Positions 9,677-21,889 of a stretch of DNA of 64,000 nucleotides are shown here, piece after piece (the stretch's first letter is position 1; every line of letters begins with the position of its first letter). The DNA is from Paramoeba atlantica. Its lineage: Eukaryota; Protista; Discosea. The notes under the pieces are model-generated. The model was not told where the DNA came from, did no database searches, and was given only the letters and a program-made list of their open reading frames with translations. The stretch covers positions 1 to 64,000 of the forward strand of contig CDRNVI010000168.1 in the NCBI GenBank assembly GCA_977017575.1, read 5' to 3'. A program made the translations under genes and the position numbers.

Positions 9677-10011
9677 CACAAGATTTTTTTGAATCAGAAC
9701 GAACTACAAAAGCTCAAAAAGGAGAGAGAGTGGCTTATTCCTGTGTTTGACATTCTTTGGGGCTTTGGGTTTTCCATTACCATTATCACGGAATCTCCAT
9801 GTTCCACAACTGCCAACAGATTGAGACAATAACGAGCCTCATGCTCCGAAACTTTGAATACCCACCATTTCCTTTCTACCCCGCCAAACGCAAATGAAAA
9901 CACTCTTTTGAGAATCAAATGAAAATAGTCTTCTCTTCTTGTGTTTACTTTTTTTGACTTTTCTTTTTATTATTTTTGGAAAAAAATAATGTGTGTTGTT
10001 GTATTGGGAAG

Positions 10012-13000
10012 TTAAAAGGGAGAAATATCACCAGTAACAACCCAATGACCAACAGCAGTCGCTCCAACCAAAAATGAGAGAATTCCAAAACCAAATTTCT
10101 TCAAATAAAAGGAAATAACTGCTGCTTCTCCAATTGATCCAACTTTGAAAGCACAACGAGAAACTCCTCCATGGAATGCACCATGTTCAAAAAGTTGGAA
10201 TGGATTCACCAAAGGATACTTTTCAACGAGAAAAAAAAAGGAGAAAAAGGAGAAAGAGAGGGAAGGAGATGAGAATAAAGAACAAATTGACTCCAAAAAG
10301 AAAAAAGAAAAAAACACAACTCAAGAGTTAAAAAAAAATTGAAAGAAAAAAACCTGAGGATGAGAAGCAGATTTGACATTTCTGACATCATGCAACAACA
10401 AAATACCCATCACAGCATTTGAAGTTTCCTATTTTGTTTTCGTGTGAAAAAAAAAGAACACATTTTGGAATCACAAAACAAACAAACAAAAGAGAAGAAA
10501 GGAAAGAGGAGAGAGAGGAGAGAGGAGACCTGGTACATCACTTCAAGAGGAGGGAAAAGATGGAATCCACCATAAGCTGCTGCAAACTGAGCATTGTGAA
10601 CAACAGATTTTGTTGCTGTTGATGGAGCCACATTGGAACAAGCCACATGACCTTCTTCACGAGCAACAACAACTCTCCAATGCTGTGAAAAGAGTCATAT
10701 TTTTTCATGTGTTTCAAAAATTTAAAAAATAAAAATAAAAAAAGAACATTCATTTTCATCTTATCTCTCTCTTCCATTTCATCCATCATCACAAAATTTT
10801 AAAATGAAAGAAAAGAAAAAAAAGAAAGAAAAGAAAAAACCTGAAGACGTTTAGCAAGTGCATAATTAGGTCCTTGAGCTGCAACAATCCCATCAACAAG
10901 ATATATTTCTTGTCCATCTTGAGTTTTGACTGGAGCAATTTGATTCTTTTTCAAAATCTGTTTTCCCAAACAAAGAAAAACAAAGAAAAGGAGAGAACAA
11001 GAACGAGAGAATGAGAGAATGAGAGAACGAGAAAAAGGGAAAGGGAGTGAGAACCAACAAAATAAGAAAAGAAAAGAAGAAATTATTTGAAAAGAAAGAG
11101 AGAAAAAAACATTTCCAAATCCCAAAAAGCGGAAAAGACTTTGCCAAAGAGGAACTTTCGTTGCATTTCTTCCCATTTCATCATGAGCTTCCTATTTTTA
11201 TTCACAAAAAATATTAAAATCAATTGTAAAATACCACACACACACCCCCCCCCAAAAAAAAGTCAACAAAAAGAAAAAAGAAAAAAAAAAAAAGAAAAAA
11301 AAAAGAAAAAAAAAATAACCTTTGGAATAACATGAACATCAGTTGGAGTGCACAAAAATGCAACAGAAGTTTGTTTGTGGTATTTACAAACTCTTTCAAT
11401 GATTCCATCACAAGCAACAGATAACTATGAATCAATCAGATTTTTCACAACACATAACAAAAAAATCTTTCTTTTTCAAAGAATTAGAAAGGGTGAAAAA
11501 AATAGAATCATCTTTTCAAAAAACCTGAACATGTAAAGCACCATCCAAATAAGTGTAATTTCCAATTGTAACTCCTCCCTCATATTTCAATGAAGTCAAC
11601 CATCTTGCAATCTCAGGTGTATCTTTCAATAAGTCAGCACCTGCACACCCATACATCTCTTCACTATCCTCCCCCAAAACTTTATCAGATTTGTATGGGA
11701 ATGTCATACTTCCACATGATTTCTTGACTCTGTTGATCAATTTCTTCCAAATAAAGTCTCGGTTCAAATCTACACAAATTCAAAAAAAAAAAACGATATG
11801 TTAGAGGAAAGAAAGAAAGAAAGAAAAAGAAAGAAAAAGAAAGAAAGAAAAAGAAAAACCAATTGCTACAATGTGAGCACCATGTTGAAGGAGAAATTCA
11901 AGTGGACCCATTGCTGATGTTGCTCCAAGAAGAATAAAAGTATGGTCTGAAAGATCAAGCCACTTTTAAAAAAATCAAAAGGATTAATTTCTTGATCCAA
12001 CAAAAAGAAAGAAAGAAAGAAAGAAAAAGAAAAAAACCTCAGGATGATCAACACAAGCTCGAATAGCATCAGCAGCACTTTGTTCAATTGTTCCATATTC
12101 CACCCAAACATCTAATTGGTTCAAAAGTTGTTTTCCTTTCAAAACAGTTTCATCATCACGGTAGGTGTAATAAGGTCGAGGAGCACCAAACTTTTGTCTT
12201 CTTGATCCTCCATAAGGGACTTCAACCTTTTGTAATGATTGATGAGTGAGTGAAAGACATAAAGAAAAAGGGGGGAGGGGGGAATAAAGGGGAGGAGAAA
12301 GAGGAGAAAGAAGGAAAAGAGGGAAAAGGAAACAAACAAAAGAAAGAAAGAAAAAATACCTCAGCATGTTTGGGTTGTGGGAGTTCACCTTTCACAAAAC
12401 CAGTTCGATAAATGAGTTTACTAATTTCAAAAATCAATTTAGTTTGTTATTGTTAATTTTAACTTCACAAAGAATAAAATCATTTTTGGTAAAATATGAA
12501 AGAAAATCAAAAAAAAAACCCATTATCCATAGCTTTTGCGAAAGATGTTGTCTTTCCATCTTGAATGAATTCAAAAGAGTTTTGAGCAACTTCTAATCCA
12601 TCCTAAAATTCCAATAAATTATCAAAAAAAAATATTCCTTTCTTTGTTTTGAAGAAAGAGAGAGAGAGAGAGGAAAAAGAGAGATTAAAAACCTTTGCAA
12701 TCTTGAAAGCATTTTCAGGAGATTCTAAACATTTTCGAACATTGTTCACGATGTGTCTTCCATATCCAAATCTCCATTTCTTCTCTCTTCTCACCTGTAC
12801 AAGTTTCAATTCAGTGTTTATTGAACATTTCAAAGAGTTCAAAGTATCCTTTTTGAAAAAAAAAAAAAAAGAGACCTTTTCAGCAAGTTCAGCATCAACT
12901 GCTTCAATTGACCCTGCAAAGATGACCTTCGAGGAAAAAAGAGAAAGAATATATCAAAAAAAAGAGAAAAGGAAAAGTCAAAAATAGAAAATGATTCACA

Positions 13001-14519
13001 GACCTTATTGGTCTGAGTTGTTGCACGTTCACCAGTTTTCTCGTTTGTAACAGGCCAAACCAAACCAGCTGGAGGAGGAGCCTTACGACCAGATCGCTAT
13101 TTCCCATTGTTAAAGAACGATTAAAAAAGAAAAAAAAAGAGGAATAATACAGAACTCATTCAAACAAGTAAAAAAACAAAGAATCAACAAACCTCTCGAT
13201 TAGCATAAGCACGTTTCCTTTGACCAAACATATTCATAATCATATACGGTCCTCCAACAATATAAATAGACAAGAAAACGAGAGACACTCGATAGAAGAA
13301 TGGGTTTTGTTCAGACAATCGAGGCAATGAGTTGTAAACCGCAAAAATTTCTCCACTGCAAAAATAAAACAGTCATTAAATGTCAGAAAAAGAACAAAAA
13401 TAGTAAGTTATCGAGAAATCGATCAATCATTCTTCTTTTTCTCTCTTTTTCATCCCATTTTGCTCCACCCTCCTCCAAAAATGAAAAGAAAGAAAAACCT
13501 AATGCCAGTTGGATAAAGAATCATGAACAAAGAATATCTCAAAAAGAACAAAAGTCCAGGGATTTTATCAGATGAAGTCAAAGTTGCAAAAACATAGAAC
13601 AAATAACGAGGGATCTCAACAAAAGACCAACTTCCAATCAACATATACAAAGACCAATGTTCTTTTTTGAAGGAAATAAAAAGTTTTAAAAATCCATGAC
13701 ACTCAACAATAGAGAGAACAAATCAAGAGAACAAAAACCTTGAGATGCAGGACTTGGAGAAAGATAGGCCCACACAACAAACACACGACCCCCAACCTAT
13801 CACAAAGAAAATCAATCATTTTGATTCCATATTTGTTTTAATAATCAAAGAATAAGAAAAAAATAGATCAAAAAAAAAGGAAGAAAAGGAATAGAAGAAA
13901 GAAAGATGAAAGAAGAACAAAACCTGGATAAAAGTTGTGAGAAGAGGAGAACGAACCAATCCAAACAACGAGTGAAAAATTTCCAAAGTTGCTGCAGTTT
14001 GGACCACTTTAAGAGGAAACTCAACTTGTTCTAAAAGAGAAATTAGACCAAGAAAAAGAGAAATAATGGTATTCAAGAAAAGAGAAGAAATGCCACACTA
14101 CAAGAAGGAATTTCACTCTAAATCAAAGGAACCAAACAAAAAGAGGAAAGAAAAAAAAACACAAAACCAATTCATAAAAGTTAGGAAAAAACAAACAAAA
14201 GAAAATAAAAAAGGAAGAGGTAAAAAAATAACAAAAACCATAAAACACTCAGCAAGTCCTTTGTCCGCTGGACCCCACCAAACGAACCACAACCAAAGAG
14301 AAAACAGAAAGGAGAAAGGAGAAAAGACAAAAGACAAAAGACAAAAGACAAAAAGACAAAAAGACAAAGAGAAAGAGAAAAACCATAAAACTCAGCAGGA
14401 GGATCAGGTCCTTGTCCACTGGACCCCATCAAATGAACCACAACCAAAGAGAAAACAAACCCCCATCCCACACACGAAACCAAATTGTACAAAATCAAAT
14501 ACAATTGGAGAATCCCCAT
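10012..14519 (-). CDS. HACD: HACD/PTPLA 3-hydroxyacyl-CoA dehydratase fused to an SDR/Rossmann-like domain, copy 1 (about 19 exons, roughly 770 aa by hand count)
   Basis: YLILYNLVS, QTAATLEIFH, SWSFVEIPRY, RYSLFMILYPTGISGE, MFGQRKR continue without a stop via intron 13097-13192 into GLVWPV..., LLGATSAMGP, GPNYALAKRLQ, SNVAPSTAT, FHGGVSRC and a hydrophobic tail. Confidence 0.85.
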
Positions 14520-15053
14520 CTTTGAAAAAACCTCTTTTCTTCTCTTTCTCTCTCTCTCTGACTTTTCTCACCAACAAACCAAAACCAAACTCTTCCAAAA
14601 AGAAAAAGAAAAAGAAAAGTGAAAAGGAAAGGGACCTTCAGCTCTTTTCGGAAAAAGAAAGAAAGAGAAAGGAGAGAGAGAAAGGAGGGTGTGTCAGTCC
14701 ATGACGCGATCGAGGTTTTTTCTTTGAGATTGTTTTTTCCTCCTCTCCGAAAAGGAAGAGAAATCTTTTTTCACTTCTTGACAAAAGAGAGGAAAGATTT
14801 TGATTTCATTTTTTCTTTTTGGCCAAAAAAAAATTGAGATCGATCTTTCTTGGAGCAAGAGTTCGAGATTCGGTGCGAATGGAAAAAAAAAGGACCAAGA
14901 CAAAACTCAATAAAACTCTTTTATACTTTATTTGGTATTTTTTTGTACTTTTTCAACCCATAAACGGAAATATTACAACGCAAACAAAAAAGTGAAAATG
15001 AATATTTTATTATTCAAACTTCACCACTTTTCAAAGAAAGAAACAAACGTTGT

Positions 15054-15548
15054 TCAGGCACTTTCAGTACAACCATCCCCCTGCTGACTGCTTTTCGCCA
15101 AAAGACTAAGAAATCCTCCATAATCACCATAAAGATCAATCTGAATTGCCTTGTCTCCTGCGAAGACGAGTTTCATGCAGAAAGTATTAATCGAATTTTC
15201 TCCGTTTGGCAGAGTACCAGTGTACACTCCATCTAAATGAACTCTGGACCCATCACTACTCTCAAAATAGTCAGTCAGATAGGTACGAAAATCTCCACCC
15301 TTTGGGAACCAAACATCCATCTCCGAGGTCAAACTATCAACACCAACAGAATATCGTCCATTAGATCGAGGAGCAAAATGTTGGTTGAATTGAACATTCT
15401 CATCTGCCAACTGGCTATTGGACTTCCGGCTGTTTTTCGCTCCGAGCTCGTTGACCCATTTTCGGACTTGATTTGCATGGGAACCGTCGTCGTCGCAAGA
15501 AGAGAGGGCCACCAGACCAAGGAAGAAGATAACGAGAAAAGTTTTCAT
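15054..15548 (-). CDS. Secreted SnoaL/NTF2-like protein, intronless, 164 aa
   Basis: ATG start and signal peptide MKTFLVIFFLGLVALSSC; alpha/beta pattern (ADENVQF...GVDSL...DFRTYLTDYF...VHLDGVYTGT...LVFAGDKAIQIDLYGD) typical of SnoaL-like folds. Confidence 0.65.
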   Translation of the reverse strand: MKTFLVIFFLGLVALSSCDDDGSHANQVRKWVNELGAKNSRKSNSQLADENVQFNQHFAPRSNGRYSVGVDSLTSEMDVWFPKGGDFRTYLTDYFESSDGSRVHLDGVYTGTLPNGENSINTFCMKLVFAGDKAIQIDLYGDYGGFLSLLAKSSQQGDGCTESA

Positions 15549-15850
15549 TTTTGAAAAAGGTTATTTGTGAAAGAGTTTTCGTTCGTGAACGTGACACTTG
15601 CTTTCCAACAAACCGAATAGAAAAAACAAAAAAAGAGAATTCTGCCCAAAAAAAAGAGAGAGTGTCCCAAGGATCAAATTAGGAAAATGTCAAATTTGGA
15701 CTTTTCAGGCCATCAAAAAAATCGAAGTTCATTCATTGAGCGAACAGCCTGAGGAAAAATGAAAACAAGTCTTCTTGTGTTTACTTTTTTTGTCTTTTCT
15801 TTTTATTATTTTTGGAAAAAAAAAATGATGTGTGTTGTTATATTGGGAAG

Positions 15851-18800
15851 TTAAAAGGGAGAAATATCACCAGTAACAACCCAATGACCAACAGCAGTCG
15901 CTCCAACCAAAAATGAGAGAATTCCAAAACCAAATTTCTTCAAATAAAAGGAAATAACTGCTGCTTCTCCAATTGATCCAACCTTGAAAGCACAACGAGA
16001 AACTCCTCCATGGAATGCACCATGTTCAAAAAGTTGGAATGGATTCACCAAAGGATACTTTTCAACGAGAAAAAGGAGAAAAAGGAAAAAGGAGGGGGGG
16101 TGGAAAGAGAGGAGATCAGAATAAAGAACAAATTTACTCCAAAAAGAAAAAAACACAATTCAAGAATTTTAAAAAAAATAATTAAAAGAAAAAAAAAACC
16201 TGAGGATGAGAAGCAGATTTAACATTTCTGACATCATGCAACAACAAAATACCCATCACAGCATTTGAAGTTTCCTATTTTGTTTTCGTGTGAAAAAAAA
16301 AGAACACATTTTGGAATCACAAAACAAACAAACAAAAGAGAAGAAAGGAAAGAGGAGAGAGAGGAGAGAGGAGACCTGGTACATCACTTCAAGAGGAGGG
16401 AAAAGATGGAATCCACCATAAGCTGCTGCAAACTGAGCATTGTGAACAACAGATTTTGTTGCTGTTGATGGAGCCACATTGGAACAAGCCACATGACCTT
16501 CTTCACGAGCAACAACAACTCTCCAATGCTGTGAAAAGAGTCATATTTTTTCATGTGTTAAAAAAATTTAAAAAATAAAAATAAAAAAGAACTTTCATTT
16601 TCATCTTATCTCTCTCTTCCATTTCATCCATCATCACAAAACTTTTAAAAAAAAAGAAAAAAAGAAAGAAAAGAAAAAACCTGAAGACGTTTAGCAAGTG
16701 CATAATTAGGTCCTTGAGCTGCAACAATTCCATCAACAAGATACATTTCTTGTCCATCTTGAGTTTTGACTGGAGCAATTTGATTCTTTTTCAAAATCTG
16801 TTTTCCCAAACAAAAAAAAACAAAGAAAAGGAGAGAGGGAAAAGGGAGTGAGAACCAACAAAATAAGAAAAGAAAAGAAGAAATTATTTGAAAAGAAAGA
16901 GAGAAAAAAACATTTCCAAATCCCAAAAAGCGGAAAAGACTTTGCCAAAGAGGAACTTTCGCTGCATTTCTTCCCATTTCATCATGAGCTTCCTATTTTT
17001 ATTCACAAAAAATATTAAAATCAATTGTAAAATACCACACACACCCCCCCCCCCCAAAAAAAAAGTCAACAAAAAGAAAAAAGAAAAAAAAAGAAAAAAA
17101 AAGAAAAAAAAAAAGAAAAAAAAATAACCTTTGGAATAACATGAACATCAGTTGGAGTGCACAAAAATGCAACAGAGGTTTGTTTGTGGTATTTACAAAC
17201 TCTTTCAATGATTCCATCACAAGCAACAGATAACTATGAATCAATCAGATTTTTCACAACACAACACAACACACATAACAAAAAAAATCTTTCTTTTTCA
17301 AAGAATTAGAAAGGGTGAAAAAAATAGAATCATCTTTTCAAAAAACCTGAACATGTAAAGCACCATCCAAATAAGTGTAATTTCCAATTGTAACTCCTCC
17401 CTCATATTTCAATGAAGTCAACCATCTTGCAATCTCAGGAGTATCTTTCAATAAGTCAGCACCTGCACACCCATACATCTCTTCGCTATCCTCCCCCAAA
17501 ACTTTATCAGATTTGTATGGGAATGTCATACTTCCACATGATTTCTTGACTCTGTTGATCAATTTCTTCCAAATAAAGTCTCGGTTCAAATCTACACAAA
17601 TTTAAAAAAACAATATGTTAGAGGAAAGAAAGAAAAAGAAAGAAAAAGAAAGAAAAAGAAAGAAAGAAAAAGAAAAACCAATTGCTACAATGTGAGCACC
17701 ATGTTGAAGGAGAAATTCAAGTGGACCCATTGCTGATGTTGCTCCAAGAAGAATAAAAGTATGGTCTGAAAGATCAAGCCACTTTTAAAAAAATCAAAAG
17801 GATTAATTTCTTGATACAACAAAAAGAAAGAAAGAAAGAAAGAAAAAGAAAAAAACCTCAGGATGATCAACACAAGCTCGAATAGCATCAGCAGCACTTT
17901 GTTCAATTGTTCCATATTCCACCCAAACATCTAATTGGTTCAAAAGTTGTTTTCCTTTCAAAACAGTTTCATCATCACGATAGGTGTAATAAGGTCGAGG
18001 AGCACCAGACTTTTGTCTTCTTGATCCTCCATAAGGGACTTCAACCTTTTGTAATGATTGGTGAGTGAGTGAAAGACATGAAAAAAGAAAGGGGAAGGGG
18101 GGAATAAAGGGGGGAATAAAGGGGAGGAGAAAGAGGAGAAAGAGGGGAAAGAGGGAAAAGGAAACAAACAAAAGAAAGAAAGAAAAAAAATACCTCAGCA
18201 TGTTTGGGTTGTGGGAGTTCACCTTTCACAAAACCAGTTCGATAAATGAGTTTACTAATTTCAAAAATCAATTTCATTTTTGGTAAAATATGAAAGAAAA
18301 TCAAAAAAAAAACCCATTATCCATAGCTTTTGCGAAAGATGTTGTCTTTCCATCTTGAATGAATTCAAAAGAGTTTTGAGCAACTTCTAATCCATCCTAA
18401 AATTCCAATAAATTATCAAAAAAAATGCTCTTTTCTTTGTTTTGAAGAAAGAGAGAGAGAGAGAGAGAGAGAGGAAAAAGAGAGATTAAAAACCTTTGCA
18501 ATCTTGAAAGCATTTTCAGGAGATTCTAAACATTTTCGAACATTGTTCACGATGTGTCTTCCATATCCAAATCTCCATTTCTTCTCTCTTCTCACCTGTA
18601 CAAGTTTCAATTCAGTGTTTATTGAATATTTCAAAGAGTTCAAAGTATCCTTTTTGAAAAAAAAAAAAGAGAGACCTTTTCAGCAAGTTCAGCATCAACT
18701 GCTTCAATTGACCCTGCAAAGATGACCTTCGAGGAAAAAAGAGAAAGAATATATCAAAAAAAAAAAGAGAAAGGAAAAATAAAAAATAGAAATTGATTCA

Positions 18801-20336
18801 CAGACCTTATTGGTCTGAGTTGTTGCACGTTCACCAGTTTTCTCGTTTGTAACAGGCCAAACCAAACCAGCAGGAGGAGGAGCCTTACGACCAGATCGCT
18901 ATTTCCCATTGTTAAAAAACGATTAAAAAAGAAAAAAAAAGAGGAATACTAAAGATAAATCCAACAGAACTAATTCAAACAAGGAAAAAAACAAAGAATC
19001 AACAAACCTCTCGATTAGCATAAGCACGTTTCCTTTGACCAAACATATTCATAATCATATACGGTCCTCCAACAAGATAAAGAGACAATAAAACAAGAGT
19101 AAATCGATAGAAGAATGGGTTTTGTTCAGACAATCGAGGCAATGAGTTGAAAATCACAAAAATTTCTCCACTGCAAAAATAAAACAGTCATTAAATGTCA
19201 GAAAAAGAACAAAAATAGTAAGTTCTCAAGAAATCGATCAATCATTCTTCTTTTTCTCTCTTTTTCATCCCATTTTGCTCCACCCTCCTCCAAAAATGAA
19301 AAGAAAGAAAACCTAATGCCAGTTGGATAAAGAATCATGAACAAAGAATATCTCAAAAAGAACAAAAGTCCAGGGATTTTATCAGATGAAGTCAAAGTTG
19401 CAAAAACATAGAACAAATAACGAGGAATCTCAACAAAAGACCAACTTCCAATCAACAAATACAAAGACCAATGTTCTTTTTTGAAGGAAACAAAATTTAA
19501 AAGAGGAAAAGGGATCAAAAGTTCGAGAACCAATAAAAGCACAACAACCCAAAGCACATCAACAATAGAGAGATATCAAATAAAGAGAACAAAAACCTTG
19601 AGATGCAGGACTTGGAGAAAGATAGGCCCACACAACAACCAAACGAGACCCAACCTATCCCCAAAGAAGAATCAGTCATTTTGGTTCAATTTTTTTCATT
19701 AACAAGAAGAAACAAGAAACCTGAATAATATTTGTAACAACAGGAGAACGAACAAAGCCAAGCAACGAGTGAAAAATTTCCAAAGTTGCTGCAGTTTGGA
19801 TCACTTTAAGAGGAAATCCAACTTGCTCTAAAAAAAAAAGGGAAAAGGTTTTGATCAAGAAAGAAAAAGAAGGAGAAGAAAAAATTCTCTCAAGATTAAA
19901 TGAACCACACAAACAGAGAGAAAACAGAAGGAAAAAAGAAAGAATAAGAAATAAACATCAAATCGAGAGGTTGTCCATTTGACCCACAAAAAAGAAAGAA
20001 AAAAAAAACATAAAAAACGCGAAAATCAATCAGGTCCATTGGACATTTCCATGTAGATAACTCAAAGAACCCCACAAAGAAAGTAAAACAAAAAAAAAAA
20101 AAACTAAAAAACAAGAAAGATGAAGACGTCGTTGGATATGAACCGCTCATCAAATAAAACACAAATAATAACAAATCAAAAGAAAGAGAAAAAGAAAAAC
20201 CATAAAACTCAACAGCAGGATCAGGTCCTTGTCCATTGACTCCCATCAAATGAACGACAAACAAATAGAAAAGGTACGCCCAGCCAGCAGCCGAAACCAA
20301 ATTGTACAAAATAAGATACAATTGGATAACTCCCAT
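15851..20336 (-). CDS. HACD: HACD::SDR-like fusion, copy 2
   Basis: Same exon structure as copy 1; fusion intron 18899-19007; C-terminal exons nearly identical. Confidence 0.85.
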
Positions 20337-20521
20337 CTTTGAATAAATCTCTTTTTTCTCTCAAATACGAACCGAACACAACAAGAAAAGAAAGAGAAAG
20401 ACAAGCGAAGAGCGCCACAGAAAAAAAAAAAAAAAAGAAAAGCGGAAAAGGGAGGATGTTTTTTCAGATGTTTTTAAATAACTTTTTTGATTTTTCAAAG
20501 GTAAAAAAGGATTTCGACGCG

Positions 20522-21889
20522 TCAGTCCATGACGCGGTCAAGAATCTCTTGTTTCGAGGGTTTTGGCAGGAATTGAGGAGGTTTTTCTATCTCTTTGTTA
20601 ATTTCAAGGAGTTCTTTTAATGCCTGAATGAGGAGAGCATTTACGGGCATAATTCTCTTTCCAGGATCAAATTCAGCTGGAACAAATCGATACTGTAAGT
20701 TCATTTGGTAGGTCAGAGCTGTAAACATGGAAGGAGCACTCAATCCAATCTCAATGACCCCCATCATTGAAGGACTGCAAATGAGATTTGACATGGCAGC
20801 ACCGTGTGCAACAATTACCAAGTCGTATTTGTTGAAGAGAAGACAATTCCCAACGAAAGATTTGTTATATGGAGAAGGATCATACTCATAATAAGTGATT
20901 GAAATCTTTCCTTTTTCTGAGGATGGCATATTCGACGTCGCAATCCCTTTTTTGACTGCCTTAATAACTGCAGATGGGTCAACAAATGAACGAATGGCAC
21001 CTGGAGGTCGGTCATAAATCAAAATCGATTGGTAATAGGGTGAATGGCGATGATGATGGACACTCGAAGGGTGTGTTTTGATGAGAGTGTTGTTATTGTT
21101 GTGGGGAGTTCTGCTGAGTGTTGGAGTGTAAGTCCCATTTTTTTTCAAGAATTGATGAAGAAAGAGGCGAAAAGTCGAGACTGTCGCAGGTGAATCAAAC
21201 CAAGCACCACAATGCCCAATATTTTCTTGTCGGAGAAAAACACAGTTCCGTCTGGTGACCGCTGAAAATTTCAAACTTTTTTTGATTTCTTTTCCTTTTT
21301 CATTAAAAGGGAGATGAACCTGTATCCAAAAAAGTATAAACGATTAGAATTAATAAGAGAATGAAGAACAAGTCAAATGTGAGAACATCACAATACATTC
21401 CATTTTTAATTTAAAAAGAAAAAAAGGAAACTCTTTTTGGGAAAACCTAACCTTCAGATTAAGCTTAGGCTGAAAAAAGGAGACGATGCCATCAAGGAGT
21501 GGTTGGTAATAATGTCTCCAAACGGTGAGCCTCTTTCGGTCATATTGGCAATAAACAAGATTTGTTGTTGGTCGAGTCGTCGTGGAAAAGGTGCTCCAGG
21601 TCTTCCCTTTCATTGTTTCTTTGGACATTGAAAGTTTTCGAAGGTATGAAAACATCGAGGTAAAAGACATTTGGAGATGACCAAGTGCTGCTTTGTCTTC
21701 AAGAAGGAAAGCTTCTTCATGAGATTGAGAGTGAATATGAATATCGAACGAACTGATCAAATCATGGATAGGCTTGCCTTGAATCCTCATCGGAGGAGCC
21801 CAATCATAGGGATCAGAGTCAGCATCAGCACCACAACAAGACGAAAAAAGAAAACCCACAAAAAAAAAGTGAAGGAAAGTCCATCTCAT
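20522..21889 (-). CDS. Glycosyltransferase family 61 (DUF563)-like protein, one intron
   Basis: Signal/anchor MRWTFLHFFFVGFLF; C-terminal DLVIVAHGAAMSNLICSPSMMGVIEI is the GT61 HGA-x-x-N signature; intron LNLK|VHLPF is in frame. Confidence 0.75.

Follow-up and report, generated by a model that had tools for sequence, protein, structure and literature searches.

A HACD dehydratase fused to an SDR-fold domain in Paramoeba atlantica: a candidate bifunctional enzyme of acyl-chain elongation

The 3-hydroxyacyl-CoA dehydratase of endoplasmic reticulum (ER) elongation is known as HACD, PHS1 or PASTICCINO2, and the characterised proteins (yeast, human, and Arabidopsis) are stand-alone, with a length of about 220-360 aa. 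The canonical ER 3-ketoacyl-CoA reductases, Ifa38/Ybr159w and HSD17B12/KAR, are classical SDRs of roughly 320 aa that are recognised by PF00106, possess an N-terminal anchor, and use NADPH. Ketoreductase and dehydratase are fused or adjacent in MFE-2 (HSD17B4/Fox2), in type I FAS/PKS, and in the FabG4-HtdX operon. In MFE-2, an SDR shares one polypeptide with an enzyme that interconverts (3R)-3-hydroxyacyl-CoA and trans-2-enoyl-CoA, the partner being a MaoC hydratase; in type I FAS/PKS, the ketoreductase acts immediately before the dehydratase.

Here, we describe a gene from a 64,000-nt stretch of Paramoeba atlantica DNA (the window, contig CDRNVI010000168.1) whose N-terminal 209 residues share with HACD/PHS1/PASTICCINO2 a whole-length profile match and the spacing of the Tyr and Glu, but in which a second domain of 554 aa follows. 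The splicing seen for its tandem paralogue, copy 2, shows that HACD and the appended domain form one in-frame fusion. The features are as follows.

14519-10012, minus strand: copy 1 fusion gene, 19 exons, 763 codons, CDS of 2,292 nt, from the ATG at 14519 to the TAA at 10014-10012
14519-13193, minus strand: HACD/PTPLA half, exons 1-5, 209 codons
14519-14384, 14030-13924, and 13796-13739, minus strand: exons 1, 2, and 3
13661-13499 and 13355-13193, minus strand: exons 4 and 5
13515-13513, minus strand: HACD catalytic-type Tyr, exon 4 (LYPTGI-S-GE)
13351-13349, minus strand: HACD catalytic-type Glu, exon 5, 7 residues from the Tyr, across intron 4
13192-13097, minus strand: junction intron (intron 5), 96 nt, phase 0, GTTTGT...AAATAG, leading from HACD into the appended domain in frame
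13096-12038, minus strand: linker and N-terminal subdomain, exons 6-11 (GLVWPVTNEK.., KKWRFGY.., VPYGG.., GTIEQSAADAI)
13096-13004, 12926-12876, 12794-12693, and 12602-12520, minus strand: exons 6, 7, 8, and 9
12420-12360 and 12226-12038, minus strand: exons 10 and 11
11962-11860, minus strand: exon 12, strand beta1, Gly-rich loop LLGATSAMGP, and strand beta2 (GAHIVAI)
11860 / 11769-11768, minus strand: split codon of the Asp after beta2 (D230)
11769-11525, minus strand: exon 13
11424-11320, minus strand: exon 14, strand beta5 and the LC(T/S)PTD motif with the candidate catalytic Thr/Ser
11191-11111, minus strand: exon 15
10957-10841, minus strand: exon 16, QGPNYALAKRLQ, with Tyr at 10864-10862 and Lys at 10852-10850 (Tyr-x3-Lys)
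10682-10530, minus strand: exon 17, strand beta6 and NVAPSTATKSV, counterpart of the SDR N-x-x-P-G-x-x-x-T
10428-10354, minus strand: exon 18
10218-10012, minus strand: exon 19, FHGG motif, amphipathic helix, hydrophobic C-terminal tail, and TAA
20336-15854, minus strand: copy 2, tandem paralogue with the same 19-exon layout (tblastn with exon peptides)
18899-19007, minus strand: junction intron of copy 2, 109 nt (intron comparison)

All 18 introns in the exon/intron model of copy 1, which was read from the sequence, are of the GT..AG type. The model bears out an earlier note on this DNA, which had placed a phase-0 GT-AG intron at 13097-13192 and read it as in frame; MFGQRKRAYANRE, LLGATSAMGP, NYALAK, NVAPSTAT, and the hydrophobic tail are likewise all present where that note put them, though its estimate of about 530 aa for the appended part should be corrected to 554 aa. 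Retention of intron 5 brings a stop two codons later (..ANREVC*), and the fusion therefore depends on splicing. Upstream of the conserved start of the appended domain, the copy 1 sequence has no in-frame ATG, that is, no alternative start.

Public run X1 contains a spliced contig of 2,204 nt that skips exactly the junction intron (13096 to 13193) and shows ten other predicted splice joints. Since its variants match copy 2 exactly, the contig is assigned to that copy, and the joint equivalent to 13096/13193 is thus shown for copy 2 and not for copy 1 itself. The equivalent intron of copy 2 confirms that the junction is kept between the paralogues. A cDNA-like contig (L118) from a 70%-identical relative stays open in a single frame from the final HACD helix through to the stop codon that ends the appended domain, and together with the copy 2 transcript it establishes the fusion as real and in frame. 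Separately, intron 1 contains a partial duplicate of exon 1, taken from its 3' end (14261-14305, minus strand; 87% identity over 15 aa by tblastn) and shifted by one base relative to the exon. The mRNA seems not to include this duplicate, as the X1 contig splices exon 1 straight to exon 2.

The HACD half was scored exon by exon against PF04387 (curated cut-off of 27 bits), giving 32.8 bits for exon 2 (profile 1-26), 49.9 for exon 4 (48-97), and 22.6 for exon 5 (100-160). It belongs to this family, and the coverage of the profile across exons 2, 4, and 5 agrees with the complete HACD domain reported earlier. Across the 45.7-Mb assembly, only the two fused copies were found to match PF04387, in a search that gave 50.5 and 32.8 bits. 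Residues Y146, P147, G149, and E153 are (nearly) invariant among 60 fused homologues. The Tyr and Glu correspond in number, as had been claimed, to Tyr-149 and Glu-156 of PHS1, with a 7-residue spacing that is nearly invariant in the fused family; both PHS1 residues are reported to be essential (PMC5008698).

The appended domain is matched by no Pfam or NCBIfam model. PF00106, PF13561, and PF08659 match none of 63 family members even at E ≤ 5, and the Gly-loop region finds SDR chains in the PDB at sub-threshold values only (E 0.26-0.94). PF02544 (TECR/Tsc13) has no match in the domain either, and the fold is that of a soluble Rossmann domain, not that of the polytopic steroid-5-alpha-reductases. 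The AlphaFold (AF2) model (pLDDT 94.5, pTM 0.93) is an SDR Rossmann fold with an extra N-terminal subdomain, and all 50 of the best-matching chains in an unbiased structure search of 48,161 chains were SDR-fold, in line with the SDR hallmarks (YxxxK, VxP..T) recognised in the earlier note. Classical SDRs superpose over ~226 residues (model residues 191-512; rmsd 2.6-3.0, Z 15-17), and yeast FAS aligns over 330 residues (model 6-534). The N-terminal subdomain is covered by the alignments of yeast FAS, mycobacterial FAS, PlmKR1, and NRPS KR; the FAS/PKS/NRPS KR chains span the model from 6-33 to 514-557 with Z 16-18.5, but rmsd 3.5-6.6.

The conserved residues of SDRs can be followed along this model. 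Exons 6-11 encode a region homologous to the extreme N-terminus of stand-alone family members. The Gly-rich loop, G208-A-x-S/A-A/E-M-G214-P215, connects strand 203-207 to helix 216-221; G208, A209, G214, and P215 are conserved (G208 and P215 invariantly), and this is an SDR-type loop, though not spaced like the classical TGxxxGxG. D230 occurs in 52/63 sequences of a mixed set and in 70/70 of a bacterial set and, by the rules known for SDRs, suggests NAD(H) and not the NADPH of the canonical cycle. T/S337, at the end of strand 331-336, and P338 are both 100% conserved; this putative catalytic Thr/Ser, assigned from secondary structure only, precedes the Tyr by about 68-69 residues instead of the usual 13 or so because of an insert between beta5 and the Tyr helix. 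Y406 (63/63) and K410 (61/63) sit in helix 400-422, and Tyr-x3-Lys is found in 70/70 bacterial sequences, but that set was retrieved with the motif. Exon 17 contributes the conserved N430, P433, T437, and S439, and the exon 19 helix corresponds to 532-550 of the model. The loop, Asp, Thr/Ser, Tyr-x3-Lys, and N..P..T..S are kept from bacteria to eukaryotes, while the hydrophobic tail, a predicted membrane anchor, occurs in eukaryotic members and is absent from bacterial ones.

Of the described systems, type I FAS/PKS ketoreductases (2uv8_A from yeast FAS alpha, 7tui_A from C. albicans FAS, 4v8l_D from mycobacterial FAS, and PlmKR1, 4hxy_B) appear to have a similar two-subdomain layout, but identity is 9-13% and there is no Pfam KR match. 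Such complex SDRs combine Tyr-x3-Asn with NADPH, whereas the appended domain has Tyr-x3-Lys and an Asp that appears to be of the NAD(H) type; it is also free-standing or HACD-fused, outside a megasynthase, and its substrate would be CoA-bound, not ACP-bound. With Ifa38/HSD17B12 it shares the SDR fold, Tyr-x3-Lys, the predicted ER anchoring, and the proposed reaction; it differs in its length (~550 aa), the lack of a PF00106 match, the extra subdomain, the predicted C-terminal position of the anchor, and an insert of 60 residues that separates strand beta5 from the Tyr helix. The likeness to MFE-2 is one of arrangement, as the partner here is the membrane protein HACD, whose fold is unrelated to that of MaoC, and its SDR portion comes from another, unnamed family.

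The earlier note called for a survey of other protists, and many algae and protists do share the pairing with HACD. Both domain orders exist, and the fusion is present in diatoms, thraustochytrids, a choanoflagellate, a chytrid, and a picoeukaryote, with hundreds of contiguous fused ORFs in the transcriptomes of other eukaryotes. HACD is N-terminal in P0003, P0015 (a Salpingoeca urceolata transcript), P0030, P0055, and most of the 120 matches listed, among which the HACD-first ones include diatoms, Octactis, Hondaea, and Aurantiochytrium. It is C-terminal in P0045, P0020 (on a compact eukaryotic contig), P0091, P0126, and P0078. The tree took in the first four of these and left out P0078; the four form one supported clade within the eukaryotic side, and the domain order has therefore been rearranged at least once. 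Orthologous fusions on record have the same architecture, with an appended domain 45-55% identical to that of P. atlantica, yet databases label them only "dehydratase", and the second domain is neither annotated nor discussed in the records and papers examined. The Aurantiochytrium gene, treated as HACD only, was knocked out and gave poor growth, for which its authors blame lost fatty-acid synthesis (PMC6164183).

Stand-alone bacterial homologues, which the earlier note had suggested, are about 500 aa long and present in at least 592 GTDB species, Acinetobacter among them; their gene neighbourhoods yielded no lipid context. An ESM Atlas fold search retrieved an actinobacterial cluster of 787-aa proteins sharing the whole domain (TM 0.77, 458 residues, rmsd 2.3), with MaoC_dehydratase in 98% of the cluster. 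MaoC performs the same dehydration chemistry with a fold unrelated to HACD. This MaoC fusion was not reproduced by sequence in 401 sampled Actinomycetota genomes.

Elsewhere in the P. atlantica assembly, a search that genes split across exons may escape found neither an ELO nor a FAE1-type condensing enzyme. PF02544 (the steroid-reductase/TECR family) has only two matches, both intronless 268-aa ORFs on contigs of 42% GC, compared with 37% for the contig of the fusion gene. If these ORFs come from the second organism present in the assembly, as they may, no TECR has been detected for the amoeba.

The appended domain is probably the enzyme for a step neighbouring dehydration. That it is a 3-ketoacyl-CoA / (3R)-3-hydroxyacyl-CoA oxidoreductase next to HACD we consider about evenly balanced, and we infer its substrate, cofactor, direction, and any channelling. 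The gene would then encode a single membrane protein that combines two catalytic halves: at the N-terminus an ordinary six-helix HACD, a (3R)-3-hydroxyacyl-CoA dehydratase, from which an 11-residue linker, made by splicing out 13097-13192, would lead into a cytosolic domain of ~550 aa and its hydrophobic tail. That domain, of an SDR-fold family without a name, would pair an N-terminal structural subdomain with a catalytic Rossmann subdomain, as type I FAS/PKS ketoreductases do, and present a putative Thr/Ser-Tyr-Lys catalytic set with the NAD(H)-type Asp after beta2. It would interconvert 3-ketoacyl-CoA and (3R)-3-hydroxyacyl-CoA, the step adjoining dehydration, and the fusion would catalyse, at the ER membrane, a pair of successive steps in the elongation of acyl chains, in the forward or the reverse direction. 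This reading is favoured by the recurrent fusion to HACD, the fold, the conserved catalytic-type residues, the MaoC-bearing Atlas cluster, the finding of PF04387 only in the fused copies, and the known pairing of ketoreductase with dehydratase. Counting against a ketoreductase is the Asp itself, which suggests NAD(H) where the canonical ER enzyme uses NADPH. The long Thr-Tyr spacing, the MaoC fusion that sequence searches did not recover, the bacterial neighbourhoods, and the undetected condensing enzyme also weigh against it.

Enoyl-type SDRs tie with ketoreductases in the structure search (peroxisomal enoyl-CoA reductase 1yxm, Z 16.8; dienoyl-CoA reductase 4fc6, Z 16.7), and because both score level, the fold cannot separate the two. 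The domain might thus be an SDR-type trans-2-enoyl-CoA reductase that takes the HACD product and replaces or supplements TECR/Tsc13, which we regard as unlikely. That step also adjoins dehydration, so the logic of a fusion is equal, and unrelated enzymes have taken over enoyl reduction more often than any other step (FabI/K/L/V), in an amoeba that may be without a detected TECR. The host genome may yet encode a TECR, though, and a strict Tyr-x3-Lys is characteristic of SDRs that act on carbonyls and alcohols, the motif of FabI-type enzymes being Tyr-x6-Lys. The apparent two-subdomain layout, moreover, fits FAS/PKS ketoreductases, and the SDR-plus-hot-dog fusions known to us pair the hydratase with a dehydrogenase, not with an enoyl reductase. 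The pair could also run in the oxidative direction, as in MFE-2, with HACD hydrating trans-2-enoyl-CoA and an NAD+-dependent domain oxidising (3R)-3-hydroxyacyl-CoA to 3-ketoacyl-CoA, so that very-long-chain acyl-CoA would be degraded or remodelled at the ER. Its chemistry and stereochemistry are identical to those of the 3-ketoacyl-CoA oxidoreductase, from which it differs in direction only; the frequency of the NAD(H)-type Asp, the MFE-2-like SDR-plus-MaoC layout of the ESM Atlas cluster, and the undetected condensing enzyme all favour it. We nonetheless hold it to be distinctly improbable, as we know of no role for HACD other than elongation dehydratase and of no thiolase partner at the ER, and the growth defect of the Aurantiochytrium knock-out was attributed to fatty-acid synthesis.

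A substrate outside the acyl-CoA cycle (e.g., a sphingoid, sterol, or aldehyde), or a non-catalytic scaffold carried by HACD, is quite improbable. The family is too distant from any characterised SDR for assignment by sequence, and HACD and ELO-type elongation are missing from the bacteria with the stand-alone form, in which the gene neighbourhoods are uninformative; repeated fusion to HACD specifically, in two orders, and to MaoC by structure search, argues for the same pathway, and the invariant catalytic-type residues speak against a pure scaffold. Wrong joining of HACD to a separate SDR-like gene in the gene model is largely refuted and now scarcely credible: a retained intron 5 would indeed end HACD at ..REVC*, and the transcript comes from copy 2 and not copy 1, but a spliced contig spans the junction, the conserved N-terminus of the second domain lacks an in-frame ATG, the parts are only 96 nt apart, and contiguous fused ORFs are numerous in other eukaryotes.

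Eukaryotes are generally assumed to share one ER elongation cycle of four enzymes, and here its HACD is joined to a previously unannotated reductase-type domain of a family that neither Pfam nor NCBIfam brings to notice. The recurrence in two orders, with an apparent actinobacterial mirror that uses an unrelated dehydratase (by structure search), yields a testable prediction about one of the neighbouring steps. Among the carriers are diatoms and thraustochytrids, which lead the production of long-chain polyunsaturated fatty acids in industry and in nature, and in which the gene has been annotated, and once knocked out, as a simple dehydratase. More tentatively than for the reaction itself, we suggest that the domain represents a hitherto undescribed family of acyl-thioester reductases, of two subdomains and NAD(H) type, that perform an ER elongation step in many protists and algae and the same chemistry in bacteria. 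If so, diatoms, thraustochytrids, prasinophyte-like picoeukaryotes, choanoflagellates, chytrids, and P. atlantica would use it for a reductive step of ER elongation, either substituting for the textbook ketoacyl-CoA or enoyl-CoA reductase or working alongside it. In the hundreds of bacterial species that have the soluble form, Acinetobacter among them, it would serve a pathway not yet recognised; for this orphan protein, the fusion provides a first functional lead.

Two tandem genes in the window join the 3-hydroxyacyl-CoA dehydratase of ER fatty-acid elongation (HACD; Pfam PTPLA, PF04387) to a second, C-terminal domain, and this fusion is not a one-off, as it recurs in public databases. The following features are used throughout.

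14519-10012, minus strand: copy 1 of the fusion gene, ATG to TAA, 19 exons
14240-14310, minus strand: duplicated 3' end of exon 1, inside intron 1 of copy 1
13192-13097, minus strand: intron 5 of copy 1, at the junction of the two halves, 96 nt, phase 0
20336-15854: copy 2, the tandem paralogue, exon structure as in copy 1
18899-19007: junction intron of copy 2
15054-15548, minus strand: intronless ORF of 164 aa between the two fusion genes

Copy 1 was modeled by three-frame translation, and each boundary was inspected. All 18 introns start with GT and end with AG, mostly as GTTTTT...AG; they are 75–353 nt long and AT-rich (GC 27% vs 39% in exons), and the summed exons amount to 2,292 nt, that is, 763 codons and a stop. 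The HACD half comprises exons 1–5 (209 codons), among which exons 2, 4, and 5 singly match PF04387 at profile positions 1–26, 48–97, and 100–160 of 162. Exon 5 ends in ...MFGQRKRAYANRE, and beyond intron 5 the frame opens with RSGRKAPPPAGLVWPVTNEK... and continues for another 554 residues. A retained intron 5 stops the frame two codons later (REVC, then stop); therefore, the fusion depends on splicing. No in-frame ATG that would serve the conserved start of the appended domain was found in the three-frame translation of copy 1. The motifs that the earlier note had picked out are all in place: exon 12 carries LLGATSAMGP, exon 16 NYALAK, exon 17 NVAPSTAT, and exon 19 the hydrophobic tail.

Intron 1 (353 nt) holds a duplicate of the 3' end of exon 1 together with its donor site (..GPADKGLAECFM followed by GTTTTTG). 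It lies one base off the register of exon 1, and the spliced contig of public sequencing run X1 goes from exon 1 to exon 2 directly.

RNA across 13096/13193 had been named as a check on the junction, and the corresponding joint was found for copy 2 in X1, a run guessed to be RNA. A 2,204-nt contig from this run, a copy-2 transcript, aligns to exons only and joins 13096 to 13193, skipping 96 nt (CT..AC on the plus strand). Further joints are 13355 to 13499, 13661 to 13739, 12420 to 12520, 11424 to 11525, 10957 to 11111, 10427 to 10529, and 10218 to 10354, and, after 3-nt shifts, 13796 to 13924 and 12926 to 13004; exon 1 is also joined to exon 2. The contigs of runs X2–X4 read through introns and therefore look like DNA. 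In exons 1, 2, 5, 11, 13, 15, and 16, the variants of the X1 contig coincide exactly with the positions at which the two copies differ and carry the copy-2 letters, so the spliced RNA comes from copy 2, with splice signals identical to those of copy 1. In a relative, whose protein P0001 is 70% identical across the appended domain, the Logan contig L118 (1,796 nt) is a single intronless ORF running from the HACD end, YRISLVILTLYAVGGPYMIQNMFGQRKRAYRNRE, through the appended domain to the stop; this cDNA-like contig gives independent support for the fusion.

The junction was said to be conserved in copy 2, and its intron there is indeed the copy-1 intron sequence with a 13-nt insertion. When 10000–14750 is compared with 15840–20600, exons and introns alike show 97–99% identity between the stop codon and ~13250, beyond which identity drops stepwise to 69–84% across HACD exons 1–3. 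At the level of exon peptides, the appended domain is 96–100% identical and HACD exon 1 is 71% identical. This pattern points to either gene conversion across the 3' part or a partial duplication of more recent date, while the HACD N-termini could diverge freely. In our 45.7-Mb assembly, only the two fused copies match PF04387, exon 13 likewise matches only these two, and no unfused HACD was found by the PF04387 profile search. The ORF lying between the two genes has a signal-peptide-like N-terminus (MKTFLVIFFLGLVALSSC..).

The appended domain belongs to an unnamed, uncharacterised SDR-fold family found in bacteria and many eukaryotic lineages. The window sequence was searched exon by exon, and neither any exon nor any of 63 homologues gave a Pfam match to the domain, even at E<=5; NCBIfam gave none for eukaryotic or bacterial members. 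PDB sequence and profile searches returned nothing significant, with sub-threshold matches of the Gly-loop region to SDRs only, and ESM Atlas feature searches (one exon; the whole domain, named clusters only) returned nothing usable. Homologues were recovered with phmmer using exon 13 alone (81 aa), which found 223 proteins among 1.84 billion representatives, and with a word-based search using the domain of the homologous protein P0055, which found 862 at E<=1e-10.

A survey for the same fusion in other organisms, suggested in the earlier note, found it widely: most eukaryotic matches are proteins of 700–800 aa with an N-terminal PTPLA. Examples include Salpingoeca urceolata (a complete transcript ORF), Octactis speculum, Hondaea fermentalgiana, Aurantiochytrium sp. 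PKUSW7, Ditylum, Stephanodiscus, Cyclotella, and several MMETSP transcriptomes. The order is reversed, with PTPLA last, in five proteins (P0045, P0020, P0091, P0126, and P0078); the gene of P0020 is found on 50-kb intron-poor eukaryotic contigs, flanked by PAN2, Sdh5, and MutL-type genes. In P0045, P0020, and relatives, the first membrane helix of HACD directly continues the terminal amphipathic helix of the domain (..YFLSLVVNFYLGLYN..GGW..); there is no separate tail anchor, and the cytosolic orientation of the domain is retained.

Public databases already contain these orthologous fusions, under the wrong label of a simple dehydratase. The chytrid protein KAJ1565892.1 bears the NCBI name PASTICCINO 2, yet has no PTPLA match in a Pfam scan at E<=0.01. 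Knock-out of the Aurantiochytrium gene (a 2,742-bp unigene) led to poor growth, and the accessible part of that report treats it as a dehydratase only (PMC6164183). Our literature searches found no description of a PTPLA–SDR fusion or of the second domain.

Stand-alone bacterial homologues, mentioned in the earlier note, do exist: when GTDB was scanned at one genome per species for the motif QGPNYx[LF]AK and the matches were confirmed with tblastn, at least 592 loci emerged. They are 35–39% identical across residues 8–530 of the domain and come from many Acinetobacter (including A. baylyi, A. pittii, and A. lwoffii), Myxococcus, Pyxidicoccus, Marinobacter, Aquabacterium, Chloroflexota, and many Actinomycetota; with our profile of the domain (A1), 23–25 of 401 sampled Actinomycetota genomes carry it, in stand-alone form only. 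The bacterial proteins stop soon after the last amphipathic helix, whereas a hydrophobic tail follows in the eukaryotic members, both fused and unfused. A maximum-likelihood analysis of 87 domains, run as a quick search with SH-aLRT support values, splits the bacterial from the eukaryote-type side with 95% support, and the four HACD-last proteins included form one clade (96%) within the eukaryotic side.

The gene neighbours of the bacterial homologues, which the earlier note had also proposed to survey, were uninformative: across 80 loci, their conservation does not extend beyond Acinetobacter (NifU-like, rhomboid, PALP, or PHO4 genes), with no lipid context and no cross-phylum partner. At a few Actinomycetota loci (L050:4060-9166 and L071), the homologue has near-gapless neighbours encoded on its own strand, a PLP-dependent decarboxylase and a thiamine-pyrophosphate enzyme; these neighbours were not seen in other phyla among the 80 loci.

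For structure prediction, residues 18–574 of P0001 served as a stand-in (70% identical) with the 63-sequence alignment, and the model has a mean pLDDT of 94.5 and a pTM of 0.93. The best Foldseek matches in the PDB are the ketoreductase region of fungal fatty acid synthase (FAS) alpha chains, at E 3.6e-5 and weaker; classical SDRs come next. On realignment, the FAS chains reach Z 16.3–18.5 over 315–354 residues (from model residues 1–14 to 530–557), and the classical SDRs reach Z 16–17 over ~226 residues (rmsd 2.6–3.0, model 190–512). A Foldseek-independent search of 48,161 representative chains has only SDR-fold proteins in its top 50, and the chains aligning into the first 190 model residues are yeast FAS, mycobacterial FAS, the polyketide ketoreductase PlmKR1, and an NRPS ketoreductase, so a Rossmann catalytic subdomain is predicted to be preceded by an extra subdomain, as in megasynthase ketoreductases. 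These share the layout, but sequence identity to them is only 9–13%. The SDR assignment in the earlier note is borne out by the predicted fold and not by the Pfam and NCBIfam models.

Conserved residues of the appended domain (position; basis)
Gly-rich loop, G208-A-x-S-A-M-G214-P215: after strand beta1; model secondary structure and alignment
Asp230: immediately following strand beta2; 52/63 (mixed alignment), 70/70 (bacteria)
Thr/Ser337-Pro338: ends strand beta5; predicted secondary structure
Tyr406 (63/63) and Lys410 (61/63): long helix following strand beta5; alignment and predicted secondary structure
Asn430, Pro433, Thr437, and Ser439: after strand beta6; predicted secondary structure

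Bacterial conservation of Tyr and Lys is partly by construction, because that set was retrieved with the Tyr/Lys motif; other positions are unaffected. An unusual 60-residue insert lies between strand beta5 and the Tyr helix in the model. The classical catalytic pair of SDRs that act on carbonyl/alcohol groups is Tyr-x3-Lys, and when beta2 is followed by an acidic residue, NAD(H) is favoured rather than NADP(H).

Within the reach of sequence analysis and structure prediction, the view of the domain as an SDR-like reductase partner of HACD is supported, and both steps flanking dehydration are candidates for it. We lean, with about even confidence, toward the step before, in which the domain would convert 3-ketoacyl to 3-hydroxyacyl, because the domain has a catalytic motif typical of classical ketoreductases and shares its two-subdomain layout with the ketoreductases of FAS/PKS, and because known pairings of an SDR with a hydratase or dehydratase (MFE-2, megasynthases, and the mycobacterial FabG4–HtdX pair) all involve the keto/hydroxy step. 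An enoyl-CoA reductase acting after dehydration (enoyl to acyl) seems rather unlikely; for it speak the peroxisomal enoyl- and dienoyl-CoA reductases, which score level with ketoreductases in the structure search, and the frequency with which this step is taken over by unrelated enzymes. Moreover, the sole two Steroid_dh/TECR-family matches in our assembly (C19:365765-366124 and C43:502192-502551) are near-identical intronless 268-aa ORFs on contigs of differing composition (GC 42% vs 37% in the window).

It is also possible that the two halves work in the oxidative, MFE-2-like direction, as the NAD-type Asp after beta2 would allow. Exon-by-exon searches of our genome, with its short exons, detected neither ELO (PF01151) nor FAE1-type KCS (PF08392) condensing enzymes, a result given no weight because of that search mode. 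Complex prediction for the two halves of P0055, run without supplied alignments, scored 0.00, which carries no weight for or against an interaction. The favoured ketoreductase assignment is a sharp and easily testable prediction.

Three observations tie the appended domain to dehydration: its fusion to HACD in two orders, the failure to find an unfused HACD in the assembly, and its matches in the ESM Atlas. There, a fold search matched a eukaryotic PTPLA cluster (TM 0.92), three bacterial stand-alone clusters (TM 0.83–0.87), and an actinobacterial 787-aa cluster sharing the whole domain (TM 0.77, 458 residues, rmsd 2.3), whose members carry a MaoC dehydratase domain in 98% and a FAS1_DH_region in 44% of cases. 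Although unrelated to HACD in fold, MaoC hot-dog enzymes likewise interconvert (3R)-hydroxyacyl and trans-2-enoyl forms. The A1 search of the 401 Actinomycetota genomes did not reproduce the MaoC fusion, none of the listed matches of a PF13452 scan has an open frame of around 787 aa, and long open frames at four loci contained no Pfam domain; the MaoC fusion therefore stands on a single Atlas row. If that row is true, at least two independent events have joined the appended domain to a dehydratase.
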